A DNA stretch of 64,000 nt from Ophelia neglecta (lineage: Eukaryota), in the NCBI GenBank assembly GCA_965285935.1, contig OZ260661.1:135284001-135348000 (forward strand), given 5' to 3'. Below the pieces are notes generated by a model. It saw only the letters and a program-made list of their open reading frames with translations. It was not told the DNA's origin and ran no database searches. Both the position numbers and the translations under genes were made by a program. Every line of letters starts with the position of its first letter. Within the stretch, counting starts at the first letter, position 1. This document shows, one piece after another, positions 1-61,993 of the stretch.

Positions 1-1268
1 TTGCATATCCCTCATTCACATTGGGTTCCCCGTCACCCCAATTTTGCCAATCATACCACGCACCACCAAACCACTCCCATCCATCTCGCCTCATTGTTAC
101 GTTGTCGCTGTTTGCTGAGTTTGAAACGTCCTTTGTTAATCCAATCCAGAATTGGTTCCTTTCCTTCACGGGATCGCAATCCTGCCCCAACATGCACTTT
201 GTCCTGGTTTAAAGGTAACAATAAGTCATACTACTTAACTGGTATAATACTAAAATAATGAAAGAACTTCTGTAAGCATTAAAATACAACAATCTTTCTT
301 ACAGCTTTTCGAAAACGAATTCGTTTTGTTCCTTGGTTTCTAATGATACTAGAGAGGCATGCATAGCTTCACATCTGCTAGCCGCTTCTGTGAAATTTCG
401 TAGAACCATCTTTCCTGAGACATAATAACACCTCTCATAATAAGGATACCACTGGCCCTCAAATGCACATAGCTTTGCTACAGCTGTAACACAGTAAACA
501 TAGCGGGTCATACTCGGGTAATAAACTACCGGGAAGAAATGTATAAGAGCGCGAGCATCTTAAGAAATAAATGCTAAGCATTGAGACAAACAGGAATCTT
601 TGATTACTAACACTATCATTGGTACAGTACAGCTATCATATTATAGTATCAGAATATATTACATGCCAAACAAAAGGAACCCGTCTTCCGCCAGCTACTG
701 TCGCCTTTTGCTTACAACCGATCAAGTGAAAGTATATTTGATATGTGTAGTAAGCCGATTTACGTACGAAGCCATGCATCAATTATATCCAACTGGGGTC
801 CATCATTTGGGTTTTTGTGAATTAGAACTATTTTAGAGGGTGTGAGAACATAACATGGCCATTTCCGACGGTACCAATGACTTTCGGATCATAGGCATTC
901 TAAGTGTCATGAAGTGCCATCTAAATGGACATTCAACCCACTCAGGAACACATTTAGCTGATGAGCTCAAGAATACTCAATGAATGAAACTGTGAGCCAT
1001 GGCTGTATACATAACACCACGCACTTATACGTATTCACGTATGGTCTATTAGTATACTTACTTATATTGGTACCCACAAAAAAACGCCCAAGCATTCATT
1101 GATTAACTCCCCTCTAATTTCTTACTGAGTTGTATTATTGAACCAAACTGAGAATTTGTATCTTCGCCTAGAATAAAGGGCACCGAAGTGTCTTCATATG
1201 TATATTCACATACCTATATATAGCGTGAATGTCGCTAAAACACCACGGAACAGGGCGGCAGGATACAT
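1..1268 (-). CDS. CTLD receptor copy A (partial; runs off the window start). Exons: SP 1268-1214, CTLD-1 483-303, CTLD-2 203-<1
   Basis: MYPAALFRGVLATFTLYI, then CAFEGQWYPYYERCYY...RCEAMHASLVSLETKEQNEFV, then FWIGL...WEW...NWGDGEPN. GT-AG sites present. Near-identical to copy D at offset 25631. Confidence 0.85.
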
Positions 1269-2121
1269 ATTGGGCCCAGATCGAGATAGTCTACCACACT
1301 GCCGACATTTAGATGCTGAAATTAACACGGAAGTGATGTTCCGATGCTCTTACATGATACCGAACCTGTCGAAGCTTTCCTCGTGTAATATATATTACTA
1401 TATAACACATCCAACGCCTGCTAGCGTTGTAGACTACACACGTTTGTTTTGGCTGGTAAAGTGTGCAGACTGCTCTTGATGATGACACGGTCTGTGATTA
1501 AGGTCTAAAAGGGTTCGCTTCGCATAAATTGCCAATACCATGAAAGCTGATCATTCTATTCAGGCATTATAATGACACCCTGCATGGAAATACAAGTTTT
1601 ATAAACGGGGGAAGCGAATCAGTATATTTATCAAATTCCGTAATATTTAAATAAGGGTACTTTTAGCATTGCACTGTATACCGTTTATAGAATCAGATGT
1701 AAACGTTTATTTTACAAACGTGCATTTATTGACCTAGTATACAACCTAGTATACCCAGCGCTCCCACCGTCTTCATTTCAGTAATTTACCGGGCCATCCA
1801 ATGTGTAAGTATTTTGTTTATAATAAATTGTTTAATCACAAAATCACAGATTAACAACTATAATTTTATGATACAGCCAGGTATGTGCGATGAAATTAGA
1901 CAGTAAATTCCGAATGACTTAATCCACAGTTTGGGGTAAATACGTCATGTTTGCCCTGTTTGCTTGGTCCAAATTATCATGCTTTACATATCTAAATGAG
2001 ACTTTAACCGTAAATCACCACAATATGATCGGTACGGATTTGAACGGGGTAAGGCATACTGCCTTGGTCCGTACCTTAGACGAATTCAAAATCAATATTT
2101 ATGCAATTATTTATCAAGCAT

Positions 2122-4140
2122 CATTTATCTTCTATAGGAGAAGTAGAGAGTCAACTCTCTCAAGTCCTGCTCATATATGATATCGCCAATGTTGCTGTCA
2201 ACCTGACTAAATATTCTCTGTCTTAAATCGCTAGTCAGACGGCAGCAACATAACACATAGATCGTATCGCCACAGGAACAGAGACGGTTTTCTCGCGGAA
2301 GTCTAGCCCACCTGCCAGTATCAACGCGCAATGAATGCGAGCCTGTACGCATCCTGGTGAACGCGACGCGAGCAATCTGTAGGATACGCGTTTCGATGAG
2401 GAATCAGACATCATACGGTTGCGGATCAGGTCGAGACCTTGGGTTATATAATCAGTCTATGTATCAAGAGTCTGAAAGTACACGTCTGACTTGGCCACGC
2501 GTGCAGCCTCAAGTGTCAAACATAACGGGGAATCACGAAAATTGACCCGCTGTGAATCTTTCCCCCAAAAGCGAGCCTGCCCTTCCCGATCAATGGCATC
2601 CACATCAGGAACTCCCGCCTCCACGAGCACACAGTGCGTGGTGGTATGTGTGCGCACGCCCGTTATAGCCTTGAGAGTTGAGATATATGCCGGTTTCAGG
2701 CAGGCCACTCAGGAATTCCAACTCTCACATCCATAGATTATGGCAGCAAAGAGTACACACTGCCAAAGGCGCTCCTTGATGACACAAGTTTGTGTTCAGA
2801 AAACACAGTAGTGGGCGCACATGTCCCTGTTTGTTTGCTATATGATCCTGTACCTGTCGGGAGATCACGCGATGAGAGATCAAGTGGCCAAGATAGCAGT
2901 ACTGCTCTGTTTGTTGAATGGCCCTCCCAGCAACGACAAACGGACGACAGTCACGTGAATTTGCTACCATAAACAATGCCTTTTTATGGTTGATCCGTAA
3001 TCCATGGCGTCCCACAAAGTCGCCACCAAAGATCTTCCGTTTACGCCTCAACGCAGCGCGTGGAGTGGCCAGTATGGCCGTGTCGTCCACCAGTAGGTGA
3101 GCGTAAAGCCAGGCTAGCCAGCCATCATCTGGGAGGGATCGAGGGACAACCGCAAGAGGATTGATGAAGAATACAAACAGGATGACAGACAGTGGAGCCC
3201 CCTGACGAAGCGCGAGAGTCGCATGAATGGTCGTGTTCCCAATGAGACTAGCCGTATTTGAAAGTAATGCACACAGTGCCGCCAAGAAACGACCACCACA
3301 GCCTTTCACAGCCAGCCAATTTAGTATTATTTGTCTTTTTACGGTGTCATATGCCTTTTCAAAGTCATTAAATGCTATGTACAATGTTTCTTTTGTTCTC
3401 CGAGCACGGTCGATAATGAGACGTAAAGTGAGCAGTTGTTTAAGACATTCTCAGCCAGGCACAGCCCTGTTCCTGGCAAGGACCCCACCAGCGAGGGAAT
3501 CGACCTATTAAATAGAGGAGTACACCTCGGCAAGAGATGGGATTTCACCCGATAGTTCCCAGGAAGAGATCGTTGCCCCTTTTTGAATAACATTGTCAAC
3601 CTCGCCACTAACCATGCGTACATGGTTTTCCCCCACCAAATCAGATATCATGTTTTATAAGACACCGAATTTGTTGCCATCCGGTAATGACTGGAAAGCT
3701 GTCAACTCCTCCCTCAATGCCAGAAAGGTACGAGTCTAGTATGTCTTGAATCACTGTGTTTAGGGCCCGCTTCAAGTCATCGGCCCTGGGCTTAGTAATA
3801 GCTGACCGTGTCAATGTGAATGTGAATATCTCAGCTAAGTCCAAGTTGACACTTGGTCTGCCTGACCCAGACTGACTCATTATGAAAACATACACAGGTG
3901 ATCGATTGTACAGGGATAATAGACCATGGGCACCAGTCAAGCGTAACATACAAGCAAAGTCAATCAAATATGTCCAAAACTTATCCAGTTCCCAGAGTTT
4001 TACCGAGCTGCAGAAATATCTATTCTCTGACAAAGCCACTGTTGTACACAGTGCCCCAAATCCAAATTTAACGGGAAAGTATCTCCACGGGAAGCCTTGA
4101 TAATCTGCCCTGGGATCCACACAAGCCACACTGTACCTAT
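2122..4140 (-). mobile_element. Old degenerate LINE relic upstream of copy A
   Basis: LFKKG..LPGNYR, FNDFEKAYDTV, LRQGAPLSVILF, LVDD, YCYLG, RTGSHSLRVDTGRW...CSC; many frameshifts. Confidence 0.85.
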
Positions 4141-4149
4141 ACGCCATAT

Positions 4150-4515
4150 ACATCATATTGGGCCGAGATCGAGATATTCTACCCCACTGCAGACATTTAA
4201 ATGCTGAAATGAGGCTGGTAATGTGATATGTGATCAAGGTCAAACAGGGGTTCGCTTCTCATAAATCGCAAATACCATGACTGCTAATCATTCTATAGAA
4301 GCATTTTAAAGGCACACCACATGGATATAGGCTTTGTAAACGGAGCAAGCGAATAAGTATATTTATAAAATTCCCTAATATTTATATAAGGATACTTTTG
4401 GCATTGAACTGTATACCGATTATTGCAGTTAATTTTTACTTAACACTGCGCTCAAATTAGACACAATAGATTCCAAATGAATTTATCCACAGTATGTGGT
4501 AAATACAACATGTTT
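4150..4515 (-). promoter_or_regulatory. Duplicated receptor 5'UTR/upstream region with ATG context, fused to the LINE relic (also ~18800, ~29790-30155, ~38170)
   Basis: CATATTGGGCCGAGATCGAGATATTCTACCCCACTGCAGACATTTAAATGCTGAAATG matches the sequence 5' of each exon 1 (e.g. 9910-9968). The following ~300 nt match 1490-1950 with deletions. Confidence 0.7.
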
Positions 4516-6062: not shown

Positions 6063-9000
6063 TTATTTTATTATTATCAAGTATTGATTAGTCCGTGATA
6101 TATTCAGTGGAGTGTATGTGACATTCGGTGAGAGGGCCTCGTATTCTCTTTCAGTTACTTTTTCCACAGAAGCCCCAACAGTCCGCCGCCCGCCTTCTCC
6201 TATGTCTTCATATGTACCATGAGTCGGCCGCCCAACTTCTTGTATGTCTTCATATGGACCATCAGTCTGCCGTCCGATTTCTTGTATATCCTCGTATGGA
6301 CCATCTACACATGGACTGTTTAAAGTATCGGCTCGTGGCTGAATGTAGCCTACTTCCTCATATTGAGAAGTAATATATTGTCCCTGTCTTGAATTTGCTA
6401 CGTTGTAATAATCATGGCCTGTGGGGGCAGGGGTGTTTGATCGTACGTCCTCGTGAGCTGCTGCTTCATTGTAATAGGTGTGTTCTGTGTAAGTCTTCTG
6501 TTGGTCTGCTATGTGTTGCTTCCTAAAAATACATTTATTGGTACTTATTATTATGAATATATACATTTGAAATCTCATATGATACTTTGGTGTTCTGTTG
6601 AGTTTTTACAATTATCACAACTACACAAACAAAAATCAATATAACCCCGATTGCTGATCCGATTAATAACTTTATAATGGTATCACAAACATCACAAATA
6701 ATATAAATATCAGCTTATTGTCAATTTGCATTTTACATTTAGCCTTCAGGATTATCATAGCAGCACATCTTCCATTTTGTACATCTTCCTGCACGCAGTT
6801 TGTTTCCGGATCATTCCCTCCGCCCAACTTTCTCACCGCAACCTATCCACTCCCAACCACTGTTTCTCACCCCGCCACCTGTCTACTCGCTCTGGACGAG
6901 AAAGTTTGCAGCCCCTTCAGTTTCTTTCACCCTTTAAGTGTCAGTAATTGGTTCTTTCTTTATTCAGCCAGCCTGCTCGTCAAGCGCTTTGCCCATCCCT
7001 CATCTTCCTGCACAACACACCTACCCTCTCCCCCAAGCATTCTGACTCGACCCCTTGGTTATCAGGCCGGGCATACTGTTGCCCCCTCAAATGTGATAAA
7101 AAACACTCTAGCCATGTTTTCCATTTTAATAAAAATATACTCCAAACGGTAAAGCATAAAATATATAACAAGAATAGATACCCGGAAAGCTTAAGCAATG
7201 GTTTACCCACGATTTAACTATGAAAGGCCCATTTGACAGTCAACATATTTGGCATCTTACTAGCTAAGATTACTAATCCGCTTCTCATAAGGACATATCT
7301 TACCTACGTCTCTTGCAGACAACATACAGAACAACAGCAATAAAGAGGATTATCACACCACCCAGCACTGGTCCGATATATAAATAAATACTGGTACCTG
7401 GAAAAGTTATAAAATGAAACTATTAGACAAAGTCTCTTTGTTCTAGTTTCGACGAAATAGTATTGGTCTGGTCAAGGTGAAGACCAACTAACACTCGGGC
7501 CTCTTTGAAGGCTGCCGAAGTTGAACTTAACCTCTTCCATATGTGAAATATATGTAGGGCATGCTTGTATAATTAAGGCTAAGCTTTCTCAGCTATACAA
7601 ACAGCAGATGAACATTGGAGCCACAAACCTACTCTGAGGAGTGTAGTTTCTGACCTTAAAACCTTTGCAATTCCTTAGCGAACATATGAAGAACATTTGA
7701 CTGTCAATCAAAATATATCGGACAATGGTGGATTGAGGGGTAAGCAAAGTAAACAGGCTGATCAGATAAAGGAGTTGGAGGGTCTCTGAGGAAACTAGCA
7801 GTCAAAGGTTCTGGAGCAGGAACAATACTTTAGGATAAACAATTTTGAAATATATATTTCGAATATCAAAGATGCGATGTTTAACGAAGCTACTCTAAAA
7901 GATCTCCTTCAATTTGTAGAGAATGATAAACCCAAAGAATAGAAGTTTACTTTACATTAAAAAAATCTGTTTTCGATTCGTGTTTCCAAATTTACAACGA
8001 CCTGTCTTCATATGCTGCACTCACGTTTAGGTAAATTTTCTGATATACATAGTTTTTACCTTGTTCACTGTTTTCAGAGATGTCTGTGGTTGCCTTGGTT
8101 GTTTGTTTAGTTTGAGATGTTGCAGCTGATGTGTTATTGTCATCTGGTATAGTTTTGGTAGAGCCATTCCTAGTAGTCGTCGCTGCTGTCGTCGCCTTTT
8201 TAGAGACATTACCTTGTTGGGGTCTTATACTGGTTAATATCGAAGCTTCTGCATCTAAGTAAAATGATTTTGCATGAAAATGGATCCGATGTATCAATTT
8301 GCGTTGTTTAGATTGCCAACCGCCAAAATTTGGTTAATTCAATGAAGCTCAGAAAAGGGTACACGTCCTTTAATTGAACCTCAATTTACCACTGAAGATA
8401 CACAGACTGGAATCTAATTCAGTCGATTTACCTTTTCTTTCACATAAAAATCTATAATTTTTTCCTGGATCATCTGTCCCAGCCCAATTTCCATCGATGA
8501 GCATCCTTGCATATCCCTCATTGCCATTGGGTTCCCCGTCAGCCCAATTTTGCCATTCATACCAAGGATCACCTAACCACTCCCATCCATCTCGCCTCAT
8601 TGTTTCGTTGTAGATGTTTGTTGAGCTTGAAACATCCTTCTTTAATCCAATCCAGAATTGGTTCATTCCATTCTCGGGATTGCAATCCCCCGACATGCAA
8701 TTTATCCTAGTTAAAAGGTAAAAAAAAAAGTCATACTCCGTAACTTATATAATATTATGTTAATAAAATAAATCTCCAAACAATTTAAAATCACAACACC
8801 CACCACGTGATGAGTATTATTGAAAAAAATGTATTGGTAAGATGACATTACTAGGGCACACATAGCATGACATTCGTTTTATTTCTATGCTGTAAGCATT
8901 AAAATACAAGAATCTTTCTTACATGATTTCGAAGACGAATTTGTTTTGTTCCTCGTTTTCTACTGATACTAGAGAGGAATCCAACCGTTCACATCTACTA

Positions 9001-9912
9001 ACCGCTTCTGTGAAATTTCGTAGAACCATCTTTCCTGAGACATAATAACATCTCTCATCATAAGGAGACCACTGGCCCTCAAAATCACACCGCCTTGCTA
9101 CAACTGTAACATAGTAAACACAAAAATCGGGAAATAAACTACCGGGAAGAAATTCACGAAAGCGTGGGCATCCTTAGAACTAAATAATACGCATTGAGAC
9201 AACAGGAATCTTTGATGACTACCACTATCATTAAAACAGTACAGCTATCATATTATTGTATCAGAATATATTACATGCCAAACAAAAGCAACCCGTCTTC
9301 CGCCAGCTACTTTCACCGTTTGCTTACAACCGATCAAGTGAAATTATATTCAATATGTATACGTGTAGAAAGCCGATTTAAGTACGAAGCCATGTTTCAA
9401 TATATTCGACTGGGTGTCATCATTTGGGGTTTTGTGAATTTGAAGTTGGACTATTTTAGAGGGTCTGAGAAAATAAGATGGCAATTTTCGACGGCACAAA
9501 TGACTTTACGATTATAGGCATTCTAAGTTTCATCAAACGCCATCTAAACGGCCATTCAACCCAAATGAGAACTATCCATGTTTGAGGGAGAAACAGGTAC
9601 ACATTTAGCTGATGAGTTCAAGAATACGCAATGAATGAAACTGTGAGCTATGGCTGTATTCACGTATTGTCTATTGGTATACTTACATATATTGGTACCC
9701 ACAATTATCAAACTTTGCCTGAAAACAACATTCAATGGTTAACTCCCCTCTAATTTCTAACCGAGTTGTATTAGTAAACCAAACTGAGAATGAAAGTATA
9801 TGTGTCTTCGCCTAGAATAAAGGGCACCCAAGTGTCTCCATAAGTATATACACATACCTATATATAGCGTAAATGTCGCTAAAACAACAAGGATCAGAGC
9901 GGCAGGATACAT
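6063..9912 (-). CDS. CTLD type I transmembrane receptor copy B (~419 aa). Exons 9912-9858, 9103-8923, 8706-8432, 8254-8060, 7397-7304, 6522-6063
   Basis: All six exons join in frame through GT-AG introns: signal peptide, CTLD (WIGL, EPN), S/T-rich stalk, TM (IYLYIGPVLGGVIILFIAVVLYVVC-KRRR) and Tyr-motif tail. Confidence 0.85.
6190..6305 (-). repeat. Coding 42-bp (14-aa) tandem repeat x3, G(P/T)YEDIxExGRxTx; present in each A-F-type tail exon in the window
   Basis: GPYEDIQEIGRQTD-GPYEDIQEVGRPTH-GTYEDIGEGGRRT. Confidence 0.85.
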
Positions 9913-10039
9913 ATTGGGCCCAGATCGAGATATTCTACCACACTGCCGACATTTAGATGCTGAAATGAACACAGCAGTGGTGTTCCGATGCTCTTACATT
10001 ATAGCGAACATGTCGAAGCTTTCCTCGTGTAATATATTT

Positions 10040-10046
10040 CTATATA
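10040..10046 (-). promoter_or_regulatory. Candidate TATA box of copy B (equivalent site in A, D, E, F)
   Basis: TATATAG ~130 nt upstream of the ATG. The AT-rich context makes this weak evidence. Confidence 0.3.
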
Positions 10047-12059: not shown

Positions 12060-15000
12060 TTAATTAGTTCGGGATATATTCAGTGGAGTGTATGTGACAT
12101 TCGGTGAGAGGGCCTCGTATTCTCTTTCAGTTACTTTTTCCACAGAAGCCCCAACAGTCTGCCGCCCGCCTTCTCCGATGTCTTCATATGTACCTAGAGT
12201 CGGCCGCCCAACTTCTTGTATATCTTCATATGGACCATCGGTCTGCCGTCCGATTTCTCGGATATCCTCGTATGGACCATCTACACATGGACTGCTTAAA
12301 GGATCGGCCCGTGGCTGAATGTAGCCTACTTCCTCATATTGAGAAGTAATATATTGTCCTTGTCTTGAATTTGCTACGTTGTAATAATCATGGCCAGTGG
12401 GGGCGGGGGTGTTCGATCGTTCGTCCTCGTGAACTGCTGCTTCATTGTAATAGGTGTGTTCTGTGTAGGTCTTCTGTTTGTCTGCTATGAGTTGCTTCCT
12501 AAAAATACATTTATTGGTACATATTATTATGCAAATACAAATTTGAAATCGCATATAATACTTTGGTGTTCAGTTCAGTTTTTCACAATTATCACAACTA
12601 CACAAACAAAAATCAAAATAACCCCGATGGCTAATCGGATGTATATGTATTTAATGGATTCACCGACATCACAAATATTATTAATATCAGCTCATTGTCA
12701 ATTTGCATTTTACATTTAGCCTTCAGGATTATCATAGCAGCTCATCTACCATTTTTTACATCTTCCTGCACGCAGTCTGTTTCCGGATCATTCCCTCCGT
12801 CCAACTTTCTCACCGCGACCTATACGCTCCCAACCCCTGTTTCTCACCCCGCCACCTGTCTACTCGCTCTGGACGCGAAAGTTTGCAGCACCGTCAGTCT
12901 CTTTAACCCTTTAAGTTTCAGTAATTGGTTCTTTCTTTATTCAGCCAACCTGCTCGTCAAGCGCTTTACCCATCCCTCATCTTCCCGCACAACACACCTA
13001 CCCTCTCCCCCAAGCATTCTGACTCGACCCCTTGGTTATCAGGCCGGGCATACTGACCACTCCCAGGCACCGGGATACTGTTGCCCCCTCAAATGTGATG
13101 AAAAACACTCTGGCCATGTTTTCCATTTTAATAAAAATATACTCAAAACGGTAAAGCATAAAATATATAACAAGAATAGATACCCGGAAAGCTTAAGCAA
13201 TGGTTTACCAATGATTTAACGATGAAAGGCCCATTTGACAGTCAACATATTTGGCATCTTACTAGCTAAGATTACTAATGCGCTTCTCATAAGGACATAT
13301 CTTACCTTCGTTTCTGGCAGACAACATACAGAACAACAGCAATAAAGAGGATTATCACACCACCCAGCACTGGTCCGATATATAAATAAATACTGGTACC
13401 TGGAAAAGTTATAAAATGATACTATTAGACAAAGTATCTTTGTTCTAGTTTCCACGAAATAGCATTGGTCTGGTCAAGGTGAAGACCAACTAACACTCGG
13501 GCCTCTTTGAAGGCTGCCGAAGTTGAACTTAACCTCTTCCATATGTGGAATGTATGTAGGGCATGCTTGTATAATTAAGGCTAAGCTTTCTCAGCTATAC
13601 AAGCAGCAGATGAACATTGGAGCCACATACCTACACTGAGGAGTGTAGTTTCTGACCTTAAAACCATTGCAATTCCTTAACGAACATATCAAGAACATTT
13701 GACTGTCAATCAAAATATGTCGGACAATGGTGGATTGAGGGATAAGCAAAGTAAACAGGCTGATCAGATAAAGGAGTTGGAGGGTCTCTGTGGAAACTAG
13801 CAGTCAAAGGTTCTGGAGCAGGAACAATACTTTAGGATAAACAATTTTGAAATTCCGTATATCAAAGATGCGATGTCAAACGAAGCTACTCTAAAAGATC
13901 TCCTTCAATTTGTAGAGAATCATAAATCCAAAGAATAGAATTTTTACTTAGCATTAAAAAAATCTGTTTTCGATTCGTGTTTCCAAATTTACAACGACCT
14001 GTCTTCATATGCTGCACTCACGTTTAGGTAAATTTTCTGATATACATAAGTTTTACCTTGTTCACTGTTTTCAGAGATGTCTGTGGTTGCCTTGGTTGTT
14101 TGTTTAGTTTGAGATGTTGCAGCTGATGTGTTATTGTCATCTGGTATAGTTTTGGTAGAGGCATTCCTAGTAGTCGTCGCTGCTGTCGTCGCCTTTTTAG
14201 AGACATTACCTTGTTGGGGTTTTATACTGGGTGATATCGAAGCTTTTGCGTCTGAGTAAAATGATTTTGTATGAAAATGGATCCGATGTACCAATTTGCG
14301 TTGTTTAGATTGCCAACGCCAACATTTGTTAATTCAATGAAGCTCAGCAAAGAGTGCACGTCCTATAATTGAACCTCAATTTACCACTGAAGATACACAG
14401 ACTGGAATCTAATTCAGTCGATTTACCTTTTCTTTCACATAAAAATCTATATTTTTTTCCTAGATCATCTGTCCCAGCCCATTTCCCGTCTATGAGCATC
14501 TTTGCATATCGCTCATTCACATTGGGTTCCCCGTCACCCCAATTTTGCCATTCATACCACGCACCACCAAACCACTCCCATCCATCTCGCCTCATTGTTA
14601 CGTTGTCGCTGTTCGCTGAGTTTGAAACGTCTTTTGTTAATCCAATCCAGAATTGGTTCATTCCATTCCCGGGATCGCAATCCTGCCCCGACATGCACTT
14701 TGTCCTGGTTAAAAGGTAACAATAAGTCATACTACTAAACTAATATAATACTACAAAAATAAAATAAGTCTCGAAACATTTGAAAATCACAAAACACACC
14801 ACATGATAGGTATTTTTGAGAAAATGTATTGTTTGGATGACAGTACTAGGACACAATAAGCATGACATTCGTTTCATTTCAATACTGTAAACATTAAAAT
14901 ACAAGAATCTGTCTTACAGGTTTTCGACGACGAATTCGTTTTGTTCCTTGTTTTCCGCTGATACTAGAGAGGCATTCATTGCTTCACATCTGCGAACCGC

Positions 15001-15944
15001 TTCTGTGAAATTTCGAAGAACCATCTTTCCTGTGACATAATAACACCTCTCATAATAAGGATACCACTTGCCCTCAAATGCACATTGCTTTGCTACCGCT
15101 GAAACACAGTAAACATAGCGGGTCATACTCGGGTAATAAACTACCGGGAAGAAATGTATGAGAGGGCGGGCATCTTAAAAAATAAATGCTAAGGTTGAAA
15201 CAAACAAGAATCATTGATAACACTATAAATAATGTAATGGAGCTATCACATTATTGTATTAGAATAAAAGAATAGGCACAACAAAAGCAACCCCTATCCG
15301 CTTAGCTACTTTCCCCGTTAGCTTATCACCGATCAAGTACAGTTATGTTCGATGTGTAAACGTGCAGTTAGCCGAATTAGGTACGATGCCATGTTTTCAA
15401 TTAAGCCTCTTGGGGTGTTGTTCTCTGGGTCTTTATAAATTTGAAGCTGGCTTGTGTTGAGGGTCTTAGAAATAACATGGCCGTTTCCGACAGCACCAAT
15501 GACTTTCGGATTATAGGCGTTCTAAGCATCATGAAGTGTCATCTAAAAGGCCATTTAACCCGATAAGAACTATCCACGTTTGAGGAAGGAACACATTTGG
15601 ATCACGAGCTCAAGAGTACTATTCGGTCAATCAATGAATCCGTGAGCGTTGGCAGTATACATAAACACAACCCACTTCAACGTATTAACTTACATTTTAT
15701 TTACATTTTTACTTATATTCGTACACACAAAACCTAAATTTACCCGAATACGTACACGCCTTCAACTCCCCTCTTATTTCTTCCATAATTGTATTAGTAA
15801 ACCAACACGCTAGCTATGAGAATGGAAATATTAGTATGTTCATATTGTATTAAGCGCACCGAGGTGTCTCAATATGTGTATACACATACCTGTACACAAC
15901 GTGATTGCCACTAAAACACCAAGGAACAGGTCGGTAAGATACAT
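12060..15944 (-). CDS. CTLD type I transmembrane receptor copy C (~413 aa). Exons 15944-15890, 15098-14918, 14704-14427, 14251-14057, 13399-13306, 12498-12060
   Basis: Exon lengths 55/181/278/195/94/439 with conserved phases. ORF track 14344-14730, 14914-15126 and 12060-12554 cover the exons. Divergent SP exon MYLTDLFLGVLVAITLCT. Confidence 0.85.
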
Positions 15945-31700: not shown

Positions 31701-31734
31701 CTTATATTCCGGTTTATTTTATTATTATCTAGTG

Positions 31735-48500: not shown

Positions 48501-49116
48501 CGTTTAAAACACAAAATTTGACATCAAGCAGGAAATCACAAAAAGCTCTACCATGATGGTTTACAGTGGTGTCTAGAATAATGCGACTCTGTATCTCATC
48601 TAAATCAGGGTTAAAGTCATTAAGTTTGCCCATTCTGGCATTAATATCTCCACAAATAACTAAAGAGTCAACATGTTCTGAATAAAGATACAACTCGGAG
48701 AGAAGATGATTAAGAAAACCTATAGAATCCCTGCCTCTGGGTGATGACTCCGGAGGAAGATAGCAGCAGTACAGTAAAAGTATAAAGTTAGTAATTTTAT
48801 CCTGGAGCTTAATTCCCAATACTCCTTCACATTGTTTGTCAATAACAGTTATGTCATACATTTGAAATAAAGACAGCTTAACAAAAACTCCAACACCCCC
48901 AGAGCCACCAGGGGCATTGACATGTATACAGGATCTATTATTACTAAACCATTTATAACCTTCAATTCGTAATTCAACCACATCCAGTAGCTTGGATTCA
49001 ATTACACAAAAAATGTCTGCATCGCTGTCTCTTACAATGGCCTCACGCAATTCATGATTTACAGAGTGCCATCCGTTAACATTTAATTCGCAGATTGTCA
49101 GTTCCCCGAAGGGCAT
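45567..49116 (-). pseudogene. LINE ORF2 (endonuclease + RT), disrupted by frameshifts and stops
   Basis: LNVNG, GGVG, GDINAR, VDY, PDH (endonuclease); KAVGLDNIP, YRGISIL, IDFHKAFDSV, GVRQGDNLSP, YADD in a shifted frame; LRIETGRF...CVFC...HFIFEC. Confidence 0.9.
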
Positions 49117-49122
49117 GTATCC

Positions 49123-50139
49123 TTATCCATTACCGCCGCGGCCCCTACCACCATGTTGCCATCCGCGGCCGCGCATACCCCCACGGGCATTGGCTCCACC
49201 TCGGGCTGAACCGCCCCGCCCTCTGACCATTCCTGAAAGCGGCAGATTATCGACAGATTCAGAGTTCAAATTTGGCGGCTCGCCAGGTGTTGACCCACTG
49301 GGGACGGACCTTGGGGTGAGAACAGAATTAGCTGACATCCGGTACTTGTTCTTCAGAGATGGTATTTCATTCGAAAGTACTTTAAAATTCAGCTCCATCG
49401 CTCTTTCTGCATGCGTTTTGCTTGAGGTAAGTATTGCTTTCGAGAACTCCATCGATTTAGCAAGTTCGCGCTTCTTTCGTAGGATTTTAATTTTCTCCTC
49501 TGTTGTTCCGAAGGCTATCTTGATCGGGCCAGGTGACTGCTGCGACTTCTGCGGCAGGCGCACTGCTTTTACGACTGTAACATCGTCACCGAGTTCTAAG
49601 GCCGATAGGAGTCTGGCTATCTTTCCAAGCAGATTTTCCTCGGGCTCCTGGTACACTGAATAGGCCATGATTGTTTTGTTTACATTGTCTACAGGGTCGC
49701 CCACTAGCTCGGCAAGACGGTTCTCAGCTTGTTGTACACTCTGTTGACACTTATCGAGCTGTTCCTTGTACTTTGCCAGCTTGCCGTCCTGTTCGGTCAC
49801 GGTCGCCCCTTGCGAGCTCTCGATAGCTGTAATCCTATTGTCTAATTTGTCTATCTGCTCATCCATGTGTTTCTTCAAATTTCCAATTTTTTTATCAAAT
49901 TCCTCTTTAATACTTGCAACAGTCGTATCAAAGTGCTGTTTTAGGTCACTTATCTTTTCAAGAAGTTCCGCGTGGCGTAGGTCTTCCTTGGTCTTTGCCG
50001 GTGTCTTAATCAACGGTGATTCCTAGTTGTTCGCCATCTTGGTTTGCGGAGTGCTTGGATCTGACGAAAGACTGTCCCTATTTTTCCTCTTCCTTGACTC
50101 GTCTGTCTCTGTTTCTGTTTCTTTGTCGATTGACAGCAT
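49123..50139 (-). pseudogene. LINE ORF1 (coiled coil, RRM-like region, RGG-rich C-terminus) with one in-frame stop at 50023-50025
   Basis: ORFs 50023-50241 and 49123-50013 are in the same frame. Heptad-like N-terminal half, KAVRLP...PGPIKIAF, C-terminal RGRGG repeats. Lies immediately upstream of ORF2. Confidence 0.8.
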
Positions 50140-51074: not shown

Positions 51075-54000
51075 CTAATCCCTTTCATTCTCATACGTCC
51101 TGCCTATGGGTTCATATGCCAGGTTCAGATAGTCCACATCCTCAGAGTCAGATTTAGCCGTTCTTTGCATTCCAATTTCTCCTTCAAACTGTCCTTCGTT
51201 ATAATAATGGTGGTTCTCTGTGTCTAGCGTTCCTGTAATATTTTTGCCAGTGTTGTAATAGGTGGAACCAGCGTTTTCCGTATCCCTGTTGGTCCGTTGG
51301 TTCCTTAAAACAAAATATAACTATATATACAATAGATGTAAATCTGCAGGTTTAGTTAACAAATAAAGACTGCTATAAGGAGAGCAGCATTGTCAATTAG
51401 GAACCCTCAGGCTTTTGACCATGAAATATAACACTATGTGTCATATTCGCGAGGTGATCATATTTACCATGCATGCTGCCCAAAATATGGAAGGCATTAT
51501 ATGTTTAGTATATACCTAATATGTCTTCTCAACAATATTTTTCTAACTGATTTAACAGCATGGATGTTTTACTTGCAATAGCGCGAAATAAAAGCTTTAC
51601 TTTGTTGCAGCTTTTTTCGGACTCATTTATTTTTATAATTGATATTTTTACTTTTAAAGCTGGATATCCACTCCCGCTTTAATAGGAATTTGTTTTTATT
51701 GCACAAATTGGCAATTTCTTTATGTGCTCACCTTTTCTTTCGGTACAAAACAACCACAATAGTAACAACAGCGCCTACAGGCAGGAGAACACCAAATACG
51801 ACCCCAATATAAAGATTTTTATCGTCATCTGGAAAGTACGAATTCATCACGTTACATGTGTCATTTCGCGCCACCCCCCCCCCCCCCCCCCCCAGAGAAC
51901 TGGAAGCCGTTAACCTTTGCTGCAACATTTTATATAGCTAAAGTATGCATCAACTGTTGTTCGCTTAAGGTGACTTGTAAGGCAATAGGCCTACGCAAAA
52001 AAAATGCCCAAAAGCACTTTAATACATTTAATGCCATTACATATATATAACCATTTCAAAAAGAAGATTTTTTTTCAAGTCGGAAAATATTGCTCGTAAC
52101 AATAGACATTTTGCTATAAATGTCCTCGCGCATTCTGATCGCGCATATAGTCTACTGTTTCTCGTATATTTTCCCTAGCATAGTATTACTCCCCGCTGTT
52201 CGTCTTTGTTATTGTGTTCTCATCTGACTCTTTCCAATCGATACAAACATTCCTACAGTGTTAAACTAAAAATACAAGATTTATCATAACTTATGCGATA
52301 TTATTCAACGCCAAAGATGCCTGTCACTGAACACTCGTACGTACCAGACACTGATTCCGTGGTTGTTTTGGTAGTAGTTGAAGGTTTATACCATTTTGTA
52401 GTCATCGGCTCCCTTTTTGTTATGTCTAAAATGAAGTATAATTATCTAGTTGAACTTGTAAAGTTAAAATAACAATTATGGGGATGGTGTTCGCAATTTG
52501 TAAAGCAAATATGCATGATATACCTTTGAAATTGCGTGTGAAAACAAAATGCTCATTCCTGTATCCAAAAATATAAAATGTGAGGGGTTTAAAGATTAAT
52601 GTAACAGGTAAAACTTAGGACACTGCTATTGTTAATCCGAGTATACCATTCTCCGATGACCATAAAGGTGATTGTAATTCAAAGAATACGCACATTTCAA
52701 TGACATAATAGGTAACTGTGTGTTGTGCAACACTAACTTCCTGATTATGTTGACCACCAAAAACGCAAAATAAATATGATCAATTTTGCCTACCTTCCCT
52801 ATCACACAAATAGCTGTATCTATGCTGGGGCTCTGCACTCGTCCATTCTCCGTCGCTTCGCATCTGTACATGTCCTCGATTGTAAGTGGGTTCTGTACCA
52901 TGCCAGTTCTTCCATTCATATCGAACATTACCCAACCAGTTCCAACCAGCTCGCCTCTCAGTTATATGCATTCCTGGAAAGGCTGAGAGGGAGGCGTTTT
53001 TTCTCAATCCAATCCAGTATTGGGTTGATGCGGTATCAAAATCGCAGCCTTCCACTGCCGTGCAGTTGATCCTATTCATATTAATACAATGATGTTTTGG
53101 CAGCAGGTATGAACCCGAAATAATATGAAAAGTGACTACCCAATAAGCCTGTCGAAATGTGTATTGTGCACTGATTTATATGGATATGTAACTGGCAGTG
53201 ACCTAGTTTCATAATACTATTCTAGAATGATTGTATACTAATTAATGTGTGTTTAAGGGGGGGGGGGGCATTTGTTCCTTGAACCTGTTTGACAGCAAGT
53301 GTACTTACAGATTGGTGACAACAAAATCCGATAGATCCTTTGTTCCAACTGACAACAGTAGGGCTCCCAGGTTCTGACATGCTTCGAGGGCGTTTTGGTA
53401 GGTCCGTACGTGATTCCGAGGTGATATGTAATAACAACGCCCTCTATAACTGAGCCAACGACCGTCGAAATTACACAACGCCGCTACAGCTGATAGAAAC
53501 ACGACGTAATATGCCAGTCGTAATCTGTAAAATAAGCATCTCAAACGAAAGAGAACCGCAGGATATATCACCCAAGAGCACCACAGGTCAATAATTGAAA
53601 CTCAAGTTTCCAAATAGTAAATTAACATGCAACAAAATATAACAAGCCAAAACTAGATACTGATAGCACTTGTAATAAGAAGTAGGCTTCCATAATGCGA
53701 GTTAGATCACAAAACAAACGAGACAGTGGTAAAACACAGATAGGAAGCTATTATGGTGTAAGCAGTCCCATAATGTTTAGAGACTAACGCTGAAAGTGTC
53801 TCAGTAGGCTCAATACCAAAGAGGTGTGTAGACGGTTCCTTTCAAATCTCCTCGATAGTACTGTATAATGAAACTGCCGTAAAGTGAATCTGTCACGCTT
53901 TTGTTGTGACTAAACACATGCATCCGCAACAAATGATAAAGAATTATTATGTAGCATATGCACATGGCCCCAAGGCGGAATAGATCCTTCAAAACCACTG

Positions 54001-55608: not shown

Positions 55609-56182
55609 GACATCGGCAAAATATCAGATGGGAATGTTTTAGACACCCAGGTTTACAGTCTGTAACAGGGAAGTTTATTCATTATCAAGTCCATGTTTTC
55701 AATGTACAAAGCATAAGTATCTCGACACTGCCTATTCATGTATGAGACTTTCAGCGTCGCGTCAGCTTTGTTATTGAATACTATGAGGCTGATGATGATA
55801 TGAAGGTATGCATTGCTATAGCGATTCTTAAATGGAGTTGCGGCAACAACATAGTGGCACTTTATTTGTTGATAAAAAGACCCTGCACACTAACACATTT
55901 TATTGCTCTGAACTTTAAAATTTGTGAACTCGAAAATACATTCTATATTATCTATACATGACAGCCCAACCAATACAATACCCATTTTGCAGTCTAGTTT
56001 AATGGGTATTTTTTTTATGAACAAATGACCATCATTAATATTGTTTGTCTATGGGCGCAGTAGTTTATGATCTTAACTATATTTTGTCGTACTTTAATGC
56101 CGTCTAACACTGCTTAATGCAATGTTTACATTAAGAAAGCACAGTGTTTCTCATGCAAAATGCAGGAATACAGCTTGAATGA

Positions 56183-59020
56183 CAATGGCCAACTTACAGC
56201 CAAGATCATATTCCCTTATATATTCAAGCGGACTCCTGTTATCGACTATCTAATATAAGGGCTCTCGAAACCATGCCTTCCAGTTGCGCGCCTAGGTATT
56301 TTGGTTTATACGACACTTTTAAGCCAATTTTGAGAATTTATCACGAGATATTTTCTTACCTACACTTCATGCTGCTGCTAATAGAATCAAACCGAAGACG
56401 TGGCGGATCGATATCAATCATTTCAGGCCCCCATTACACTAGGACCGAACGCTAAATTCTAGNNNNNNNNNNNNNNNNNNNNNNNNNNNNNNNNNNNNNN
56501 NNNNNNNNNNNNNNNNNNNNNNNNNNNNNNNNNNNNNNNNNNNNNNNNNNNNNNNNNNNNNNNNNNNNNNNNNNNNNNNNNNNNNNNNNNNNNNNNNNNN
56601 NNNNNNNNNNNNNNNNNNNNNNNNNNNNNNNNNATTCACGCTATTTGCCCCAGACTCCACATGTAAACATTGTATCAACACTTTGCCATGTTCCACTTTA
56701 TAAATTTATCTTCGAACTCTACCACAAATAATTTTTAAATACGGACAATCAGCTTAGTTAATTTTATGTGATGTATTTTTCATCCATAATTTTAATAATT
56801 GTTAGGATTCTTGGTGCGACACCACTTTCTATTGCCTTATAATTATGAGTTATATTTGCCAATACCATCCAGTTTAATGCAAATTCTATATAAACAATTA
56901 CCTTCATAAAGCTCGGGTAGCATCTATGCTCAACCTTTCCTCCTTCCGTCATCCCCGGAACCCGCCAAAGACAGTCCAACCTCAAAGGTCGCTGCGGGGC
57001 CGACTGGCCCTCATAATTGCCTCAATACTCATTATTGGTTGCGCCTCCCACTGTCTGTGCTTTTTTTTCCACATACTTCATAATAATATAACCAAGTTTT
57101 TTTTATATGCGCCAAAACACGTATCACAATGGCCAACTTACAGCCAAGATCATACTCCCTTATATATTCAAGCGGACTCCTGTTATCGACTATCTAATAT
57201 AAGGGCTCTCGAAACCATGCCTTCCAGTTGCGCGCCTAGGTATTTTGGTTTATACGACATTTTAAGCCAATTTTGAGAATTTGTCACGAGATATTTTCTT
57301 ACCTTCACTTCATGCTGCTGCTAATAGCATCAAACCGAAGACGTGGCGGATCGATAGCAATCATTTCAGGCCCCCATTACACTAGGACCGAACGCTAAAT
57401 TCTAGNNNNNNNNNNNNNNNNNNNNNNNNNNNNNNNNNNNNNNNNNNNNNNNNNNNNNNNNNNNNNNNNNNNNNNNNNNNNNNNNNNNNNNNNNNNNNNN
57501 NNNNNNNNNNNNNNNNNNNNNNNNNNNNNNNNNNNNNNNNNNNNNNNNNNNNNNNNNNNNNNNNNNNNNNNNNNNNNNNNNNNNNNNNNNNNNNNNNNNN
57601 NNNNNNATTCACGCTATTTGCCCCAGACTCCATATGTAAACATTGTATCAACACTTTGCCATGTTCCACTTTATTATTTTATCTTCGAACTCAACCACAA
57701 ATAATTTTTAAATACGGACGATCAGCTTAGTAAATTTTATGTGATGTATTCTTCATCCATAATTTAATAATTGTTAGGATTCTTGGTGCGACACCACTTT
57801 CTATTGCCTTATAATTATGAGTTATATTTGCCAATACCATCCAGTTTAATGCAAATTCTATATAAACAATTACCTTCATAAAGCTCGGGTAGCATCTATG
57901 CTCAACTTTTCCTCCTTCCGTCATCCCCGGAACCCGCCAAAGACAGTCCAACCTCATAGGTCGCTGCGGGGCCGACTGGCCCTCATAATTGTCTCAATAC
58001 TCATTATTGGTTGCGCCTCCCACTGCCTGTGCTGTTTTTTTCACATACTTCATAATAATATAACCAAGTTTTTTTTATATGCGCCAAAACACGTATCACA
58101 ATGGCCAACTTACAGCCAAGATCATACTCCCTTATATATTCAAGCGGACTCCTGTTATCGACTATCTAATATAAGGGCTCTCGAAACCATGCCTTCCAGT
58201 TGCGCGCCTAGGTATTTTGGTTTATACGACACTTTTAAGCCAATTTTGAGAATTTGTCACGAGATATTTTCTTACCTACACTTCATGCTGCTGCTAATAG
58301 CATCAAACCGAAGACGTGGCGGATCGATAGCAATCATTTCAGGCCCCCATTACACTAGGACCGAACGCTAAATTCTAGNNNNNNNNNNNNNNNNNNNNNN
58401 NNNNNNNNNNNNNNNNNNNNNNNNNNNNNNNNNNNNNNNNNNNNNNNNNNNNNNNNNNNNNNNNNNNNNNNNNNNNNNNNNNNNNNNNNNNNNNNNNNNN
58501 NNNNNNNNNNNNNNNNNNNNNNAAAATTCACGCTATTTGCCCCAGACTCCACATGTAAACATTGTATCAACACTTTGCCATGTTCCACTTTATAAATTTA
58601 TCTTCGAACTCAACTACAAATAATTTTTAAATACGGAAAATCGGCTAAGTAAATTTAATGTGATGTATTCTTCATCCATAATTTAATAATTGTTAGGATT
58701 CTTGGTGCGACACCACTTTCTATTGCCTTATAATTATGAGTTATATTTGCCAATACCATCCAGTTTAATGCAAATTCTATATAAACAATTACCTTCATAA
58801 AGCTCGGGTAGCATCTATGCTCAACCTTTCCTCCTTCCGTCATCCCCGGAACCCGCCAAAGACAGTCCAACCTCAAAGGTCGCTGCGGGGCCGACTGGCC
58901 CTCATAATTGCCTCAATACTCATTATTGGTTGCGCCTCCCACTGCCTGTGCTGTTTTTTTTACATACTTCATAATAATATAACCAAGTTATTTTTTATAT
59001 GCGCCAAAACACGTATCACA
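56183..59020. repeat. Tandem triplication of a ~0.95-kb unit, each copy with an N gap at the same position
   Basis: Units begin CAATGGCCAACTTACAG at ~56183, ~57128 and ~58099. Gaps at 56463-56633, 57406-57606 and 58379-58522. Confidence 0.9.
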
Positions 59021-60281
59021 AGTCCTTACATATTACACTACCGTTACCACGTCCACTATATCACACGGGAATGAGAGTAGTGAAATATTTGTTAAACAAT
59101 ACATGTTGTCCGTTTGGTCATTTTATTCAATTGATATCGCATGACATTGACATTTAACTATTTTAAAATATATTTTTGGTAAATTTAAAATTGTCTCGCA
59201 GATTAGCAATAACGGCTTAGAAACACTAAATACAAATAGTGAAAGAATGAGTTTAAGACAGCCTAAACACAAGAGGTTAATCCAAATAAGAGATGGACAC
59301 TTTAGTAAGTTGCGTATGGTTTAGATTATTGTAGGGGCTAAGTAAATGCATATTTCATTGCAGAAACATACAAATGAAGTTCATTAAATTGTCAATATCC
59401 TTCCTATCCTTATTTCAACTTCACCCTTACTATTTAAACAAAATATCCAAATGATGTTTTAATTTGTCGCTTAATAACTAGCAAATATGTTTAATTGGAT
59501 TTAACAGATGCTGATGCTCATACAAGCACGTAGAATAACTCATGCTCAAATACACCATTGACAGGTGGTACATTCATAACAGCGACAAATGTACATATAT
59601 ACAATCCATAGGTATAACAATTGCATCCCTGTCATCATATAACGCAATATTCCCACACTACTATATCACCACTGGAAGTAAACCTCCGAGTTCAAAGCGA
59701 TTCGGCATAACATTATATGGTGATTTACAAATGGCTATTAACGGATAACAGCATGCTTCTTCTCCCAGTCAAATTACACATAATACACAATAAGGTAATC
59801 CTACTTTACAATGATTTTGAGGTGTGAATAACCAGGTTTGTTCCTGTTGTATTGTGTATGCGTTATAATAATATGCATATTTAATTAAGATAATTTATAC
59901 TTATAATCAAGTCAAATTATTCTGTAGCTACTGATAAGATACATACCCCACTGAGAGATCTTTCTTCCTTGTGATAAATATTTCTCCATATATTCTCCAC
60001 ATACAGCATTAATTTTTATGACTGTATACTTATATCACATAGAGCAATAAACAATTGTGACATAAAGTTGAAATAATATATGTATATTGAGTACGTGCTT
60101 CTGTACAAATGGGCAATTGTTTTCCATTGAGACGAGCATTTACAATGATATCGCATGAAAAGATGTGATTTGCATGCAATGGAATCACATGAAATAAGCT
60201 AAATGAAATAAGCTAAACGATTATAGTAAGTCCAGCAAAGACCTATTCTTGTTTGATGGCAAGAGCGGCTCTGATTTCAAG

Positions 60282-61993
60282 TCAGATTTTATATCTAAGA
60301 AGGCCCCGATTTCTCCTGTCTAGCGTCCCTAGATCTTCATACGATGTATGTTCATTGCCTGGTATTACGTTCTGGGTGTTACTTCCAGTTGCCTGGTTTG
60401 GTGGCCCGCTCCCGGCAGTAGCTATATGCCTTCCGGGATACGTACAATAAGTGGACATCGCTATTGTAGCCAGGGCTTCGTCTTTGTCTTCTATAGTGGA
60501 ACAATATGCATATTCGTTGTTGGTGTCTTCGTTCGTGGCGACTATCCTCCTTCAAAAAGTATTATAATAATCCATGCATTAGTTAAAAATCGTTCCATTT
60601 ATTGATAATAAGGTAAATTATATACCTGGATTAATAACACATGGCTTTATTTTGCATACACGCAAAGAACATAATATACGTGTATAGTATAAATGATCAC
60701 GTGCTTACCTATCCGTTCGATTTATGACAATTATTACAAGGGTAATAATTATAACGAGCATAACGGCCAGCACTGTTAAACTGTATAGGTAGAGATGTGT
60801 ACCTGAAAGTATAGTGGTGCAGGATATGCATATATAGGTGGGATGCATTTTAAAACATGAAATGAAGTGGTCGTTTAAATGATGCATGTGAAGTAGCATG
60901 TGATTGCTGACATTGAAGGTAATTGGTCTGACGTGAGGGCGTGAGACTTATTATGCTTTTTCAGTATTCTTGTCAGCTTTTTTTTTGAACTCTCTGCTGT
61001 CAAGCAAGACGAATGTGTCCAAATGATGTTTACAATATAAATGTCCCTCGAACTCTATACCGTTTACCGTATGAGAAGGTGTCTATACAAGTCTATAAAA
61101 ATGCACGTGTAATCAGTGAATTGCATGCTAAAAACATTCAGAATATTTCCTCCTTGAACGCCACAACCACAATTGTACCACTGCAGCACGGCATATACCG
61201 TGATTTATTTAACCGGCATTTATCAAGCAATAGACTTAATTTCTCAGTATTATTACATGAAATAACTTTACAAGGGCAAATTTGACCTTATGCTTTACAT
61301 CTTGGTCTGACTCATCGCGTTCGGGAAGTGGATTTAATTGCAACATAGTGTGACTAGGTGACTTTGCTATTCTGCTAGCTAACTACTCCCATTTTACCTG
61401 TAATTTGTAATAAACATAAAGGCTGAGAATGGGATTGGGTGGGGTTTTATGAAAGGGCAGGGGAGAGGGGCGATGGAGGGGTAACATTAACCAAACTATG
61501 CCATGTTACTCCCCCCCCCCCTGTTGTTTTGTCGCTAGCTTTGCACATGCATTAATGAAAGTATTCATTTTATTAAGGCAGAAAGTATGAAAGTTGATAG
61601 TGCGAGTATAAATCATAACATATGCCGATAATTCAGCCACCATGCTTTATGATATAGTATACTACAAACTCAGTGTTATACAGTATGCATGAGGTTTAAG
61701 GCACACCTCCCTGTGCTTGGTAAAGCAAGATATCTCTTCTGTCAAAAATTGACTGTTTCCTAATTGAACATTACCATATTCCAAATCATCCGATCCACTT
61801 TCCGAAGAGGTTTTCACGTTCACACTCGTTGATATCCAAATGTGCACGGGTGTAGTGTTTGTCTCACCTTCTATGGCAGTTGGCGTTGCTAGAGACGCTG
61901 GTAGTGGAAGTGGAGTATTGGCAACGCTTTCTAGGTTTGGCATCTGCTTGGTGATTGGCCTCTTGTTCGTTGTGGATGACAGTACCGTTCGAC
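60282..61993 (-). CDS. 3' exons of a further related membrane receptor H: stalk 61993-61775, TM 60802-60709, tail 60549-60282; ectodomain exons not identified
   Basis: The 94-nt phase 1/2 TM exon GTHLYLYSLTVLAVMLVIIITLVIIVINRTDR matches the size and start of the A-F TM exon. S/T/P-rich phase 1/1 exon. Open 89-codon tail containing EYAY and TSYEDL. Confidence 0.65.

Follow-up and report, generated by a model that had tools for sequence, protein, structure and literature searches.

A tandem array of predicted type I C-type lectin-like receptors with multi-tyrosine tails in Ophelia neglecta

Membrane-bound receptors with a C-type lectin-like domain, or CTLD, have been described from the Pacific oyster, where they take part in haemocyte signalling, with phagocytosis also in the reported pathway (PMC12842671, PMC13027682). 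CgCLec-HTM has a CTLD, a C-terminal transmembrane (TM) segment, which gives it a type I layout, and a hemITAM, a half version of the immunoreceptor tyrosine-based activation motif, or ITAM, and its signal passes via Syk, ERK and Rel to IL-17 and TNF; CgCLec-TM1 also carries a hemITAM, is Syk-associated and is described only as 'transmembrane' (PMC12842671, PMC13027682). Here we describe a tandem array of related genes in Ophelia neglecta, found in and beside a 64,000-nucleotide stretch of DNA (contig C1:135284001-135348000; hereafter the window), which is predicted to encode single-pass type I membrane receptors with a CTLD head and a tyrosine-rich tail. Compared by description only, the oyster and Ophelia proteins each have a single CTLD, are anchored in the membrane and bear a tyrosine motif on the cytoplasmic side. 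They differ in that the oyster receptors have one hemITAM, in contrast to the 13 tyrosines, the three YEDI motifs at ITAM-like spacing and the end resembling an immunoreceptor tyrosine-based inhibition motif (ITIM) found here. The present family is further distinguished from them by its 12-gene array, its EPN motif (QPS in CgCLec-HTM), the lack of a C2-C3 disulfide and an extra CX5C loop.

Among vertebrates, Dectin-1/CLEC-2 and the natural killer (NK)-complex receptors likewise couple a CTLD to hemITAM, ITAM or ITIM signalling in clustered, fast-evolving families, and the D-G-x-Y-x-x-I core of the Ophelia tail recalls the DEDG-YxxL hemITAM of the Dectin-1/CLEC-2 type. However, the vertebrate NK-complex and Dectin receptors are type II proteins, many of them paired with adaptors via a charged TM residue, whereas the present family is type I by prediction, with an uncharged TM segment and a self-contained tail, and is not a member of those receptors. 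Draper, CED-1 and MEGF10 are type I invertebrate receptors whose tail contains a long-spacer ITAM that the Syk-type kinase Shark recognises once Src has phosphorylated it; they differ in having an EGF/EMI ectodomain rather than a CTLD and in being single conserved genes rather than an array that may be lineage-specific. The vertebrate receptors layilin, CD302 and chondrolectin resemble the family in layout (signal peptide (SP), one CTLD, TM segment and short tail in type I orientation) and differ as conserved single-copy genes without multi-tyrosine ITAM/ITIM tails. Hydractinia Alr and the Botryllus fuhc-linked receptors are, like the genes described here, tandem, variable, type I, invertebrate and equipped with tyrosine motifs, but have Ig-like or other ectodomains and functions defined by genetics and polymorphism. 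What appears to be new in Ophelia is a tail without a found homologue, in which 13 tyrosines, three YEDI motifs at ITAM-like spacing and an ITIM-like end would be combined in one chain, together with a predicted CTLD variant that lacks the C2-C3 disulfide and has a variable CX5C loop, and a 12-gene array whose crossover history is still visible.

Self-comparison of the window revealed 6-8-kb units recurring at 76-96% identity from its start to ~44 kb. When the open frames of one such unit served as tblastn queries, a set of five peptides recurred in constant order at six places on the minus strand of the window. After 60 kb had been added on the left, the search returned 12 copies between coordinates -52768 and 43376 (coordinates throughout are window positions, negative values lying left of the window). 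The six close paralogs proposed in a first-pass annotation of the window are borne out by tblastn and exon alignment, and belong to a larger array of 12, all on the minus strand, that extends over ~95 kb and contains no assembly gaps. The genes were numbered G1-G12 from left to right, with G7-G12 in the window and G1-G6 in the 53 kb to its left. Exon boundaries were read on G9 and carried to the other 11 genes by exon-by-exon alignment, and every protein search, profile and scan used single exons.

All genes follow a six-exon plan comprising SP, CTLD1, CTLD2, a Ser/Thr-rich stalk, TM and tail. The SP exon has 55 coding nucleotides, an MYPxxLF start and the donor AG/GTATGT in phase 1, and is followed by exons of 181 nt (CTLD1), 278 nt (CTLD2; 275 in G8), 180, 195 or 201 nt (stalk, phase 1-1), 94 nt (TM; 91 in G1) and 439 nt including the stop (tail), all of these length variants being frame-preserving. 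Every homologous boundary is AG/GT in 12/12 genes with compatible phases, no exon of the 12 contains an in-frame stop, and the G9 model amounts to 413 codons. The predicted type I topology follows from the exon order SP-CTLD-stalk-TM-tail and the basic residues after the TM segment.

The predicted ectodomain contains a divergent long-form CTLD split over two exons. The CTLD1 exon matches positions 3-33 of the Pfam Lectin_C profile (PF00059) at 19.8 bits and the CTLD2 exon positions 40-107 at 14.3 bits; each exon alone is below the cut-off of 22.6 bits, and the two are complementary halves of the profile. The CTLD2 exon of a divergent relative, D1, scores 20.7 bits. Searched against the PDB, a single CTLD2 sequence reached only E = 0.019, and a profile of 13 CTLD2 exons matched the CTLD of REG4 (2kv3) at E = 6e-4. 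The WIGL motif and the C0-C0', C1 and C4 cysteines are invariant, and the C2 and C3 cysteines are replaced (by Y/H and P/L-G) in 13/13 sequences, the divergent ones included, leaving no canonical C2-C3 disulfide. An extra CX5C pair lies in an enlarged variable loop just before the WIGL strand. EPN is present in 10 of the 12 copies, with EPD in G6 and EPT in G12, and the divergent relatives have EPT (D1) and EPD (D2); a Glu follows three residues after the EPN position, and the WND triplet is not recognisable (W-A/Y-G-T-D-D).

Between head and membrane lies a Thr/Ser-rich stalk of 59-66 residues with three or four N-glycosylation sequons. The TM exon encodes IYLYIGPVLGGVIILFIAVVLYVV, followed by basic residues, and its helix is uncharged and contains a GxxxG motif. 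The tail comprises 145 residues and the motifs YYNE and YYNV (both YxN), YEEV, a set of three DGPYEDI units at 14-residue intervals, YEAL and, at its end, VTYTPL. Motifs were counted in 11 tails; G1 carries a different tail exon. The 42-bp repeat coding for the DGPYEDI units is present in every one of them, and the ITAM consensus Yxx[LI]-x(6-12)-Yxx[LI] has two overlapping matches starting at Y76 and Y90, with a spacer of 10, in 11/11. The ITIM consensus [ILVS]xYxx[ILV] is matched at residue 134 by VTYTPL in 10 tails and by VTYNPL in G2, and a second time by S/VQYEEV in 10/11. Twelve of the 13 tyrosine positions are invariant, the other being changed from Y to N in G11, and the ITAM-consensus, ITIM-consensus and YxN motifs are all present in every tail.

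Based on this layout and the oyster analogy, the role of the family is probably innate immune recognition on haemocytes with phosphotyrosine signalling. The lectin head would bind a ligand, either glycan or protein, presented by microbes or cells, and receptor clustering would lead to phosphorylation of the tail by Src-type kinases. The three DGPYEDI units could then offer a tandem-SH2 kinase of the Syk/Shark type two overlapping sites of the ITAM consensus, YYNE and YYNV would fit Grb2-type SH2 domains, and the C-terminal VTYTPL would fit the ITIM consensus for an SHP-type phosphatase, such that start and brake signals may reside on one chain. The array itself would expand and reshuffle via unequal crossing-over and gene conversion, with copies lost to retrotransposons.

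Several points weigh against an immune signalling role. It is argued by analogy only, from CgCLec-HTM and CgCLec-TM1 on haemocytes, and the gene models are predictions from sequence. Sugar binding is uncertain because the WND calcium/sugar triad is unrecognisable in the predicted head (W-A-G..TDD). The ITAM-like spacer of 10 residues is outside the classical 6-8, and orthologues of Syk and SHP were not specifically picked out among the SH2 matches in the genome. The same YxxΦ motifs could, moreover, serve as endocytic signals.

This last point leads to the alternative that survives best, namely an endocytic, scavenger or adhesion receptor in which the YxxΦ motifs (YEDI, YEEV, YEAL, YTPL) are AP-2 sorting signals by which bound glycoconjugates are taken up, and not SH2 docking sites. 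A type I protein with one CTLD and a mucin-like stalk would be in keeping with other type I CTLD receptors, all conserved tyrosine motifs also read as YxxΦ, and the calcium/sugar site is only partly canonical. However, the number of tyrosines, their acidic surroundings, the 14-residue-spaced YEDI triplet and the YxN motifs go far beyond sorting needs, the tail fits kinase and SH2 preferences, and the oyster precedents use Syk (PMC13027682). We therefore consider a purely endocytic or adhesive function unlikely and prefer phosphotyrosine signalling.

The family is young, and its sequences support a history of birth-and-death turnover, as the first-pass annotation had proposed. The G3 gene is 99-100% identical to G2 from the 5' flank to about codon 29 of CTLD1 and is identical to G4 afterwards, and G2, G3 and G4 are regularly spaced at 6,940 and 6,944 bp. 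G3 is thus a chimera, the product of an unequal crossover that gave it a new head. Along their entire length, the G7 and G10 genes share 99.8-100% identity, G10 alone being interrupted by a long interspersed nuclear element (LINE); the flanks of the duplicated block fall to ~96% and then give way to other nearest neighbours. A CTLD1 relic and orphan tail exons add to the evidence of turnover. Orphan tail exons lie left of the window, and in one of them the 42-bp repeat amounts to 4.4 units that are 98% identical; these near-identical units compare with three diverged units in each of the 11 genes. A reverse-transcriptase-like fragment in gene orientation is present in most array spacers (2725-4243, 17020-18269, 28356-29883 and 36985-38260) and beside the orphan tail exons (L002:1294-2139 and L004:4347-5108); it was either duplicated along with the units or is a substrate for unequal crossing-over.

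Identity on this scale also raises the concern that some of the copies are artefacts of the assembly, with G7/G10 and G3/G4 (from CTLD1 onward) representing haplotypes or repeats laid out in tandem. Identities of 99.8-100% over kilobases would be expected in that case, and the assembler did leave gaps in another repeat 30 kb away. Against this stand the private LINE of G10, the block flanks at ~96% with different neighbours beyond them, and the gap-free array; the regular G2-G3-G4 spacing is, in addition, what unequal crossing-over predicts. An artefactual origin of these copies is thus improbable.

The array also shows the imprint of concerted evolution. Intron Kimura two-parameter distances fall from 5' to 3' (0.19, 0.19, 0.12 and 0.07), and mean segment identity, at 82-84% in the 5' introns, climbs to 94% in the last one, the level of the tail exon. 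The CTLD exons exceed the introns on either side of them in conservation by 4-6 points. The intron gradient parallels the exon gradient, and the quietness of the TM and tail exons is therefore partly homogenisation of the 3' half rather than constraint alone. The near-invariance of the TM exon, pointed out in the first-pass annotation, is real at 92% mean nucleotide identity and has to be attributed in part to this process.

Selection was assessed from 495 substitutions counted by parsimony on exon trees and from the ratio of nonsynonymous to synonymous divergence (dN/dS) by the pooled Nei-Gojobori method in nine non-redundant genes. Not one of the 495 changes creates a stop codon, in contrast to ~29 expected under neutrality (5.5% of random changes; P ~4e-13). 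The introns contain 40 indel blocks in ~1.8 kb, of which seven are multiples of three, whereas the exons have four indels in 1.17 kb, all in frame, vs ~26 expected at intron density. The absence of stops and the restriction of exon indels to in-frame events indicate that the family has been kept open by selection. Per exon, dN/dS was 0.85 for CTLD1, 0.83 for CTLD2, 0.59 for the stalk, 0.64 for TM and 0.38 for the tail. The CTLD exons together gave 0.84 vs 0.41 for TM plus tail (bootstrap P = 0.007), so that dN/dS is not uniform across exons. In no exon was dN/dS significantly greater than 1, the tree counts giving 1.03 for CTLD2. The hottest stretch is CTLD2 codons 5-16, covering the CX5C loop, with 26 replacement vs 2 silent changes (ω ~3; P = 0.075, uncorrected for multiple windows), and the adjoining WIGL core (codons 17-26) has two replacement vs four silent changes. 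These patterns are suggestive of diversifying selection on the predicted lectin head. The earlier claim of diversifying heads holds insofar as the lectin exons evolve at about twice the dN/dS of TM plus tail, and falls short insofar as no exon is significantly above 1; the ~21 differences in 92 CTLD-2 residues that it cited between two copies correspond to G8 and G9, which are 77% identical with 21 differences.

Taking each tail tyrosine together with the three positions after it gives 46 codons, which have accumulated eight replacements vs 23.4 expected (P = 2e-4) and 12 silent changes; the 13 tyrosine codons have one replacement vs 7.2 expected (P = 0.006). This deficit places the tail constraint on the tyrosine motifs, the most constrained part of the tail, in agreement with their earlier designation as signalling tails. 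It also bears on a further alternative, in which the copies of this young array are not expressed or are decaying, their frames being open owing to recent duplication and their lectin exons drifting neutrally. Lectin exon dN/dS values of 0.8-1.0 and the near-identical pairs G7/G10 and G3/G4 are compatible with such decay, but it is contradicted by the missing stops, the in-frame exon indels, the constrained CTLD core and tyrosine motifs, and the retention of 72/72 splice junctions, which together make it very improbable. The least probable of the alternatives, an allorecognition or self-recognition locus with polymorphic heads discriminating conspecific tissue or gametes, could draw on the tandem array with reshuffled heads, the variable loop at CTLD2 codons 5-16 and the co-occurrence of ITAM- and ITIM-like motifs in one tail, yet dN/dS is not above 1, nothing indicates a colonial or fusing animal, and the known receptors of this kind (Hydractinia Alr and the Botryllus fuhc genes) have other folds.

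Homologues of the tail were sought in several protein libraries. Word searches with the tail and CTLD2 exons came back blank under a length filter that passes over proteins of ~413 residues, and a profile of 12 tails found no homologue among 1.84 billion representative proteins, the near relatives of this genome being outside these libraries. Twelve weak matches to the tail profile (best 4e-17) were repeat proteins of the LEDLGQQTQ type without tyrosines and were rejected as periodic or compositional resemblance. As a control for coverage, no match to the open reading frame (ORF) of a young LINE from the window exceeded 52% identity, and the top-scoring one had 46%; the absence of tail relatives is therefore weak evidence for lineage restriction. 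The first-pass description of the family as lineage-specific therefore agrees with the lack of a tail homologue and is limited by the composition of the libraries. Its statement that it did not recognise a named family likewise agrees with these searches for the tail, although the kind of receptor is known: a membrane CTLD protein with a tyrosine activation motif is already described from the oyster (PMC12842671, PMC13027682). In the ESM Atlas, an unnamed, mostly molluscan cluster of 133 residues (score 0.90) and a low-scoring resemblance to poxvirus A36R (0.75) were returned, both as leads only.

Within the 762 Mb of the genome searched for relatives, the YEDI tail is confined to this cluster, with 11 close copies and three weaker matches in two orphan tail exons. 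G1 combines a close-paralog lectin head with a different tail exon on the minus strand (-53350 to -52988; L001:6650-7012) that lacks YEDI units and is unique in the genome. A C-terminal N-[VS]-T-Y motif is common to the family (NVTYTPL), G1 (NSTYARTL) and D2 (NVTYATT), the last a relative located just right of the window, and the G1 sequence hints at tail swapping on a conserved terminal tyrosine motif. At least 83 CTLD2-like exons were found, and almost all of them share the chromosome of the array, at 133.2-135.5 Mb and 144.7-144.8 Mb, which makes the array the youngest branch of an extensive CTLD region. A second tandem array with at least 18 CTLD2-like exons on the plus strand at ~8-kb spacing lies 9.4 Mb to the right (C1:144674332-144826172), and every match in it ends in the same TAA.

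SH2 exon matches in the genome number at least 108 and include one SH2-tyrosine-kinase gene. Dense tandem clusters of SH2 exons are located at C2:96400464-96663665 (more than 25 within 260 kb), C12:55497436-55525995 and C5:3278762-3606222, which suggests lineage-specific expansions of SH2 proteins as possible partners of tyrosine-tail receptors. The best SH2 pair (C8, 14.98 Mb) was considered as a Syk-type locus and rejected, being a Csk-like SH2-tyrosine-kinase gene instead (C8:14976001-14992000, minus strand). About 1 kb upstream of it is a second full SH2 match within proline-rich repeats, each beginning WFHGK.

The individual gene models in the window are all on the minus strand. G7 is represented by its 5' part (1-1268), with SP at 1214-1268, CTLD1 at 303-483 and CTLD2 at 1-203 (plus 74 nt beyond the window start), and has its stalk, TM and tail exons left of the window. 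G8 is complete (6063-9912), with SP 9858-9912, CTLD1 8923-9103, CTLD2 8432-8706 (one codon shorter), stalk 8060-8254, TM 7304-7397 and tail 6084-6522; its stop is changed from TAA to CAA (6063-6086), which makes the tail frame seven codons longer, to 6063. The reference model G9 (12060-15944) comprises SP 15890-15944, CTLD1 14918-15098, CTLD2 14427-14704, stalk 14057-14251, TM 13306-13399 and tail 12060-12498 including the stop, with an AATAAA ~20 nt downstream of the gene end. The 42-bp repeat of its tail exon, encoding the three DGPYEDI units, spans 12156-12281 on the same strand in 3.0 copies with 77% matches. G10 (20335-26899) has SP 26845-26899, CTLD1 25934-26114, CTLD2 25557-25834, TM 21382-21475 and tail 20335-20773, its stalk being divided into a body at 25217-25380 and the last 15 nt plus donor at 22124-22138. 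The intervening 3,078 bp (22139-25216, plus strand) are a 5'-truncated non-LTR retrotransposon, the G10 LINE, inserted 15 nt before the end of the stalk exon and retaining an open 1003-aa ORF (22078-25089) with an RVT_1 domain. G11 is complete (31735-35557), with SP 35503-35557, CTLD1 34546-34726, CTLD2 34095-34372, stalk 33759-33938, TM 32994-33087 and tail 31735-32173, as is G12 (39522-43376), with SP 43322-43376 (donor GTACGT), CTLD1 42360-42540, CTLD2 41869-42146 (with EPT for EPN), stalk 41519-41719, TM 40770-40863 and tail 39522-39960.

Right of G12, the frameshifted CTLD1 relic, a pseudo-exon on the minus strand at 44721-44890, adjoins a LINE at 45.6-50.0 kb. This near full-length non-LTR retrotransposon occupies 45567-50013 on the minus strand between G12 and D1, with an ORF1-like frame at 49123-50013, an endonuclease frame at 48214-49116 and frameshift-split reverse-transcriptase pieces at 47722-48036, 46888-47685 and 45567-46508.

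Of the two divergent relatives that were reported to share the gene plan, D1 (51075-53692, minus strand) does so in full, with the same phases and 38-40% CTLD identity to the family. Its exons are a candidate SP at 53625-53692 (weak donor GTTAAT), CTLD1 at 53309-53489 (181 nt), CTLD2 at 52794-53071 (278 nt), stalk at 52345-52425, TM at 51732-51828 and tail at 51075-51303, and its tail, unique to D1, contains two ITIM-consensus motifs (VDYLNL and LAYEPI) and three YxN motifs. A run of ~20 G is present in its stalk-TM intron (51873-51893). The other, D3 (60282-61993, minus strand), shares the plan only in part, with a stalk-like exon at 61775-61993 (phase 1-1), TM at 60709-60802 and tail at 60282-60549. 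Its TM exon has 94 nt and the family phases and begins GTHLYLY (GTSIYLY in the family), and its tail includes TSYEDL. Pfam and relaxed tblastn searches of 61994-64000 turned up neither an SP nor a CTLD exon. The intergenic spacer between D1 and D3 contains a tandem repeat of 772-bp units at 56179-59021, to which no strand was assigned, with copies 97-98% identical. Three assembly gaps (56463-56633, 57406-57606 and 58379-58522) fall exactly at its unit boundaries, and neither the copy number of the repeat nor the D1-D3 distance is therefore fixed by the assembly; the gaps touch no exon, and no reading frame crosses or depends on them.

A more far-reaching interpretation, which we regard as speculative and rather improbable as a whole, is that the array is a germline-diversified lophotrochozoan recognition system for pathogen recognition or allorecognition. 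In such a system, a hypervariable, disulfide-closed CX5C loop reshuffled by unequal crossing-over would be wired to a single-chain tail with two overlapping ITAM-type sites, Grb2-type sites and a terminal ITIM, the ITAM valency being set by the 42-bp minisatellite. If true, this would amount to a self-contained activating-plus-inhibitory immunoreceptor with tunable signal strength.

C-type lectin expansions are common in marine invertebrates, and very few of their membrane-bound members have a known signalling route. The Ophelia array offers a test case in which one receptor exists as twelve near-complete natural variants; its tail unites ITAM-like, Grb2-like and ITIM-like sites on a single chain, and the tyrosine motifs are visibly protected by selection. 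The origin of new receptor heads is also visible in it, a crossover inside the first lectin exon having given rise to G3. Should expression and SH2 binding be confirmed, the CTLD-Syk paradigm of the oyster would come to include a multi-motif, self-regulating receptor, and the family would be material for the study of how invertebrate recognition diversifies without somatic rearrangement.

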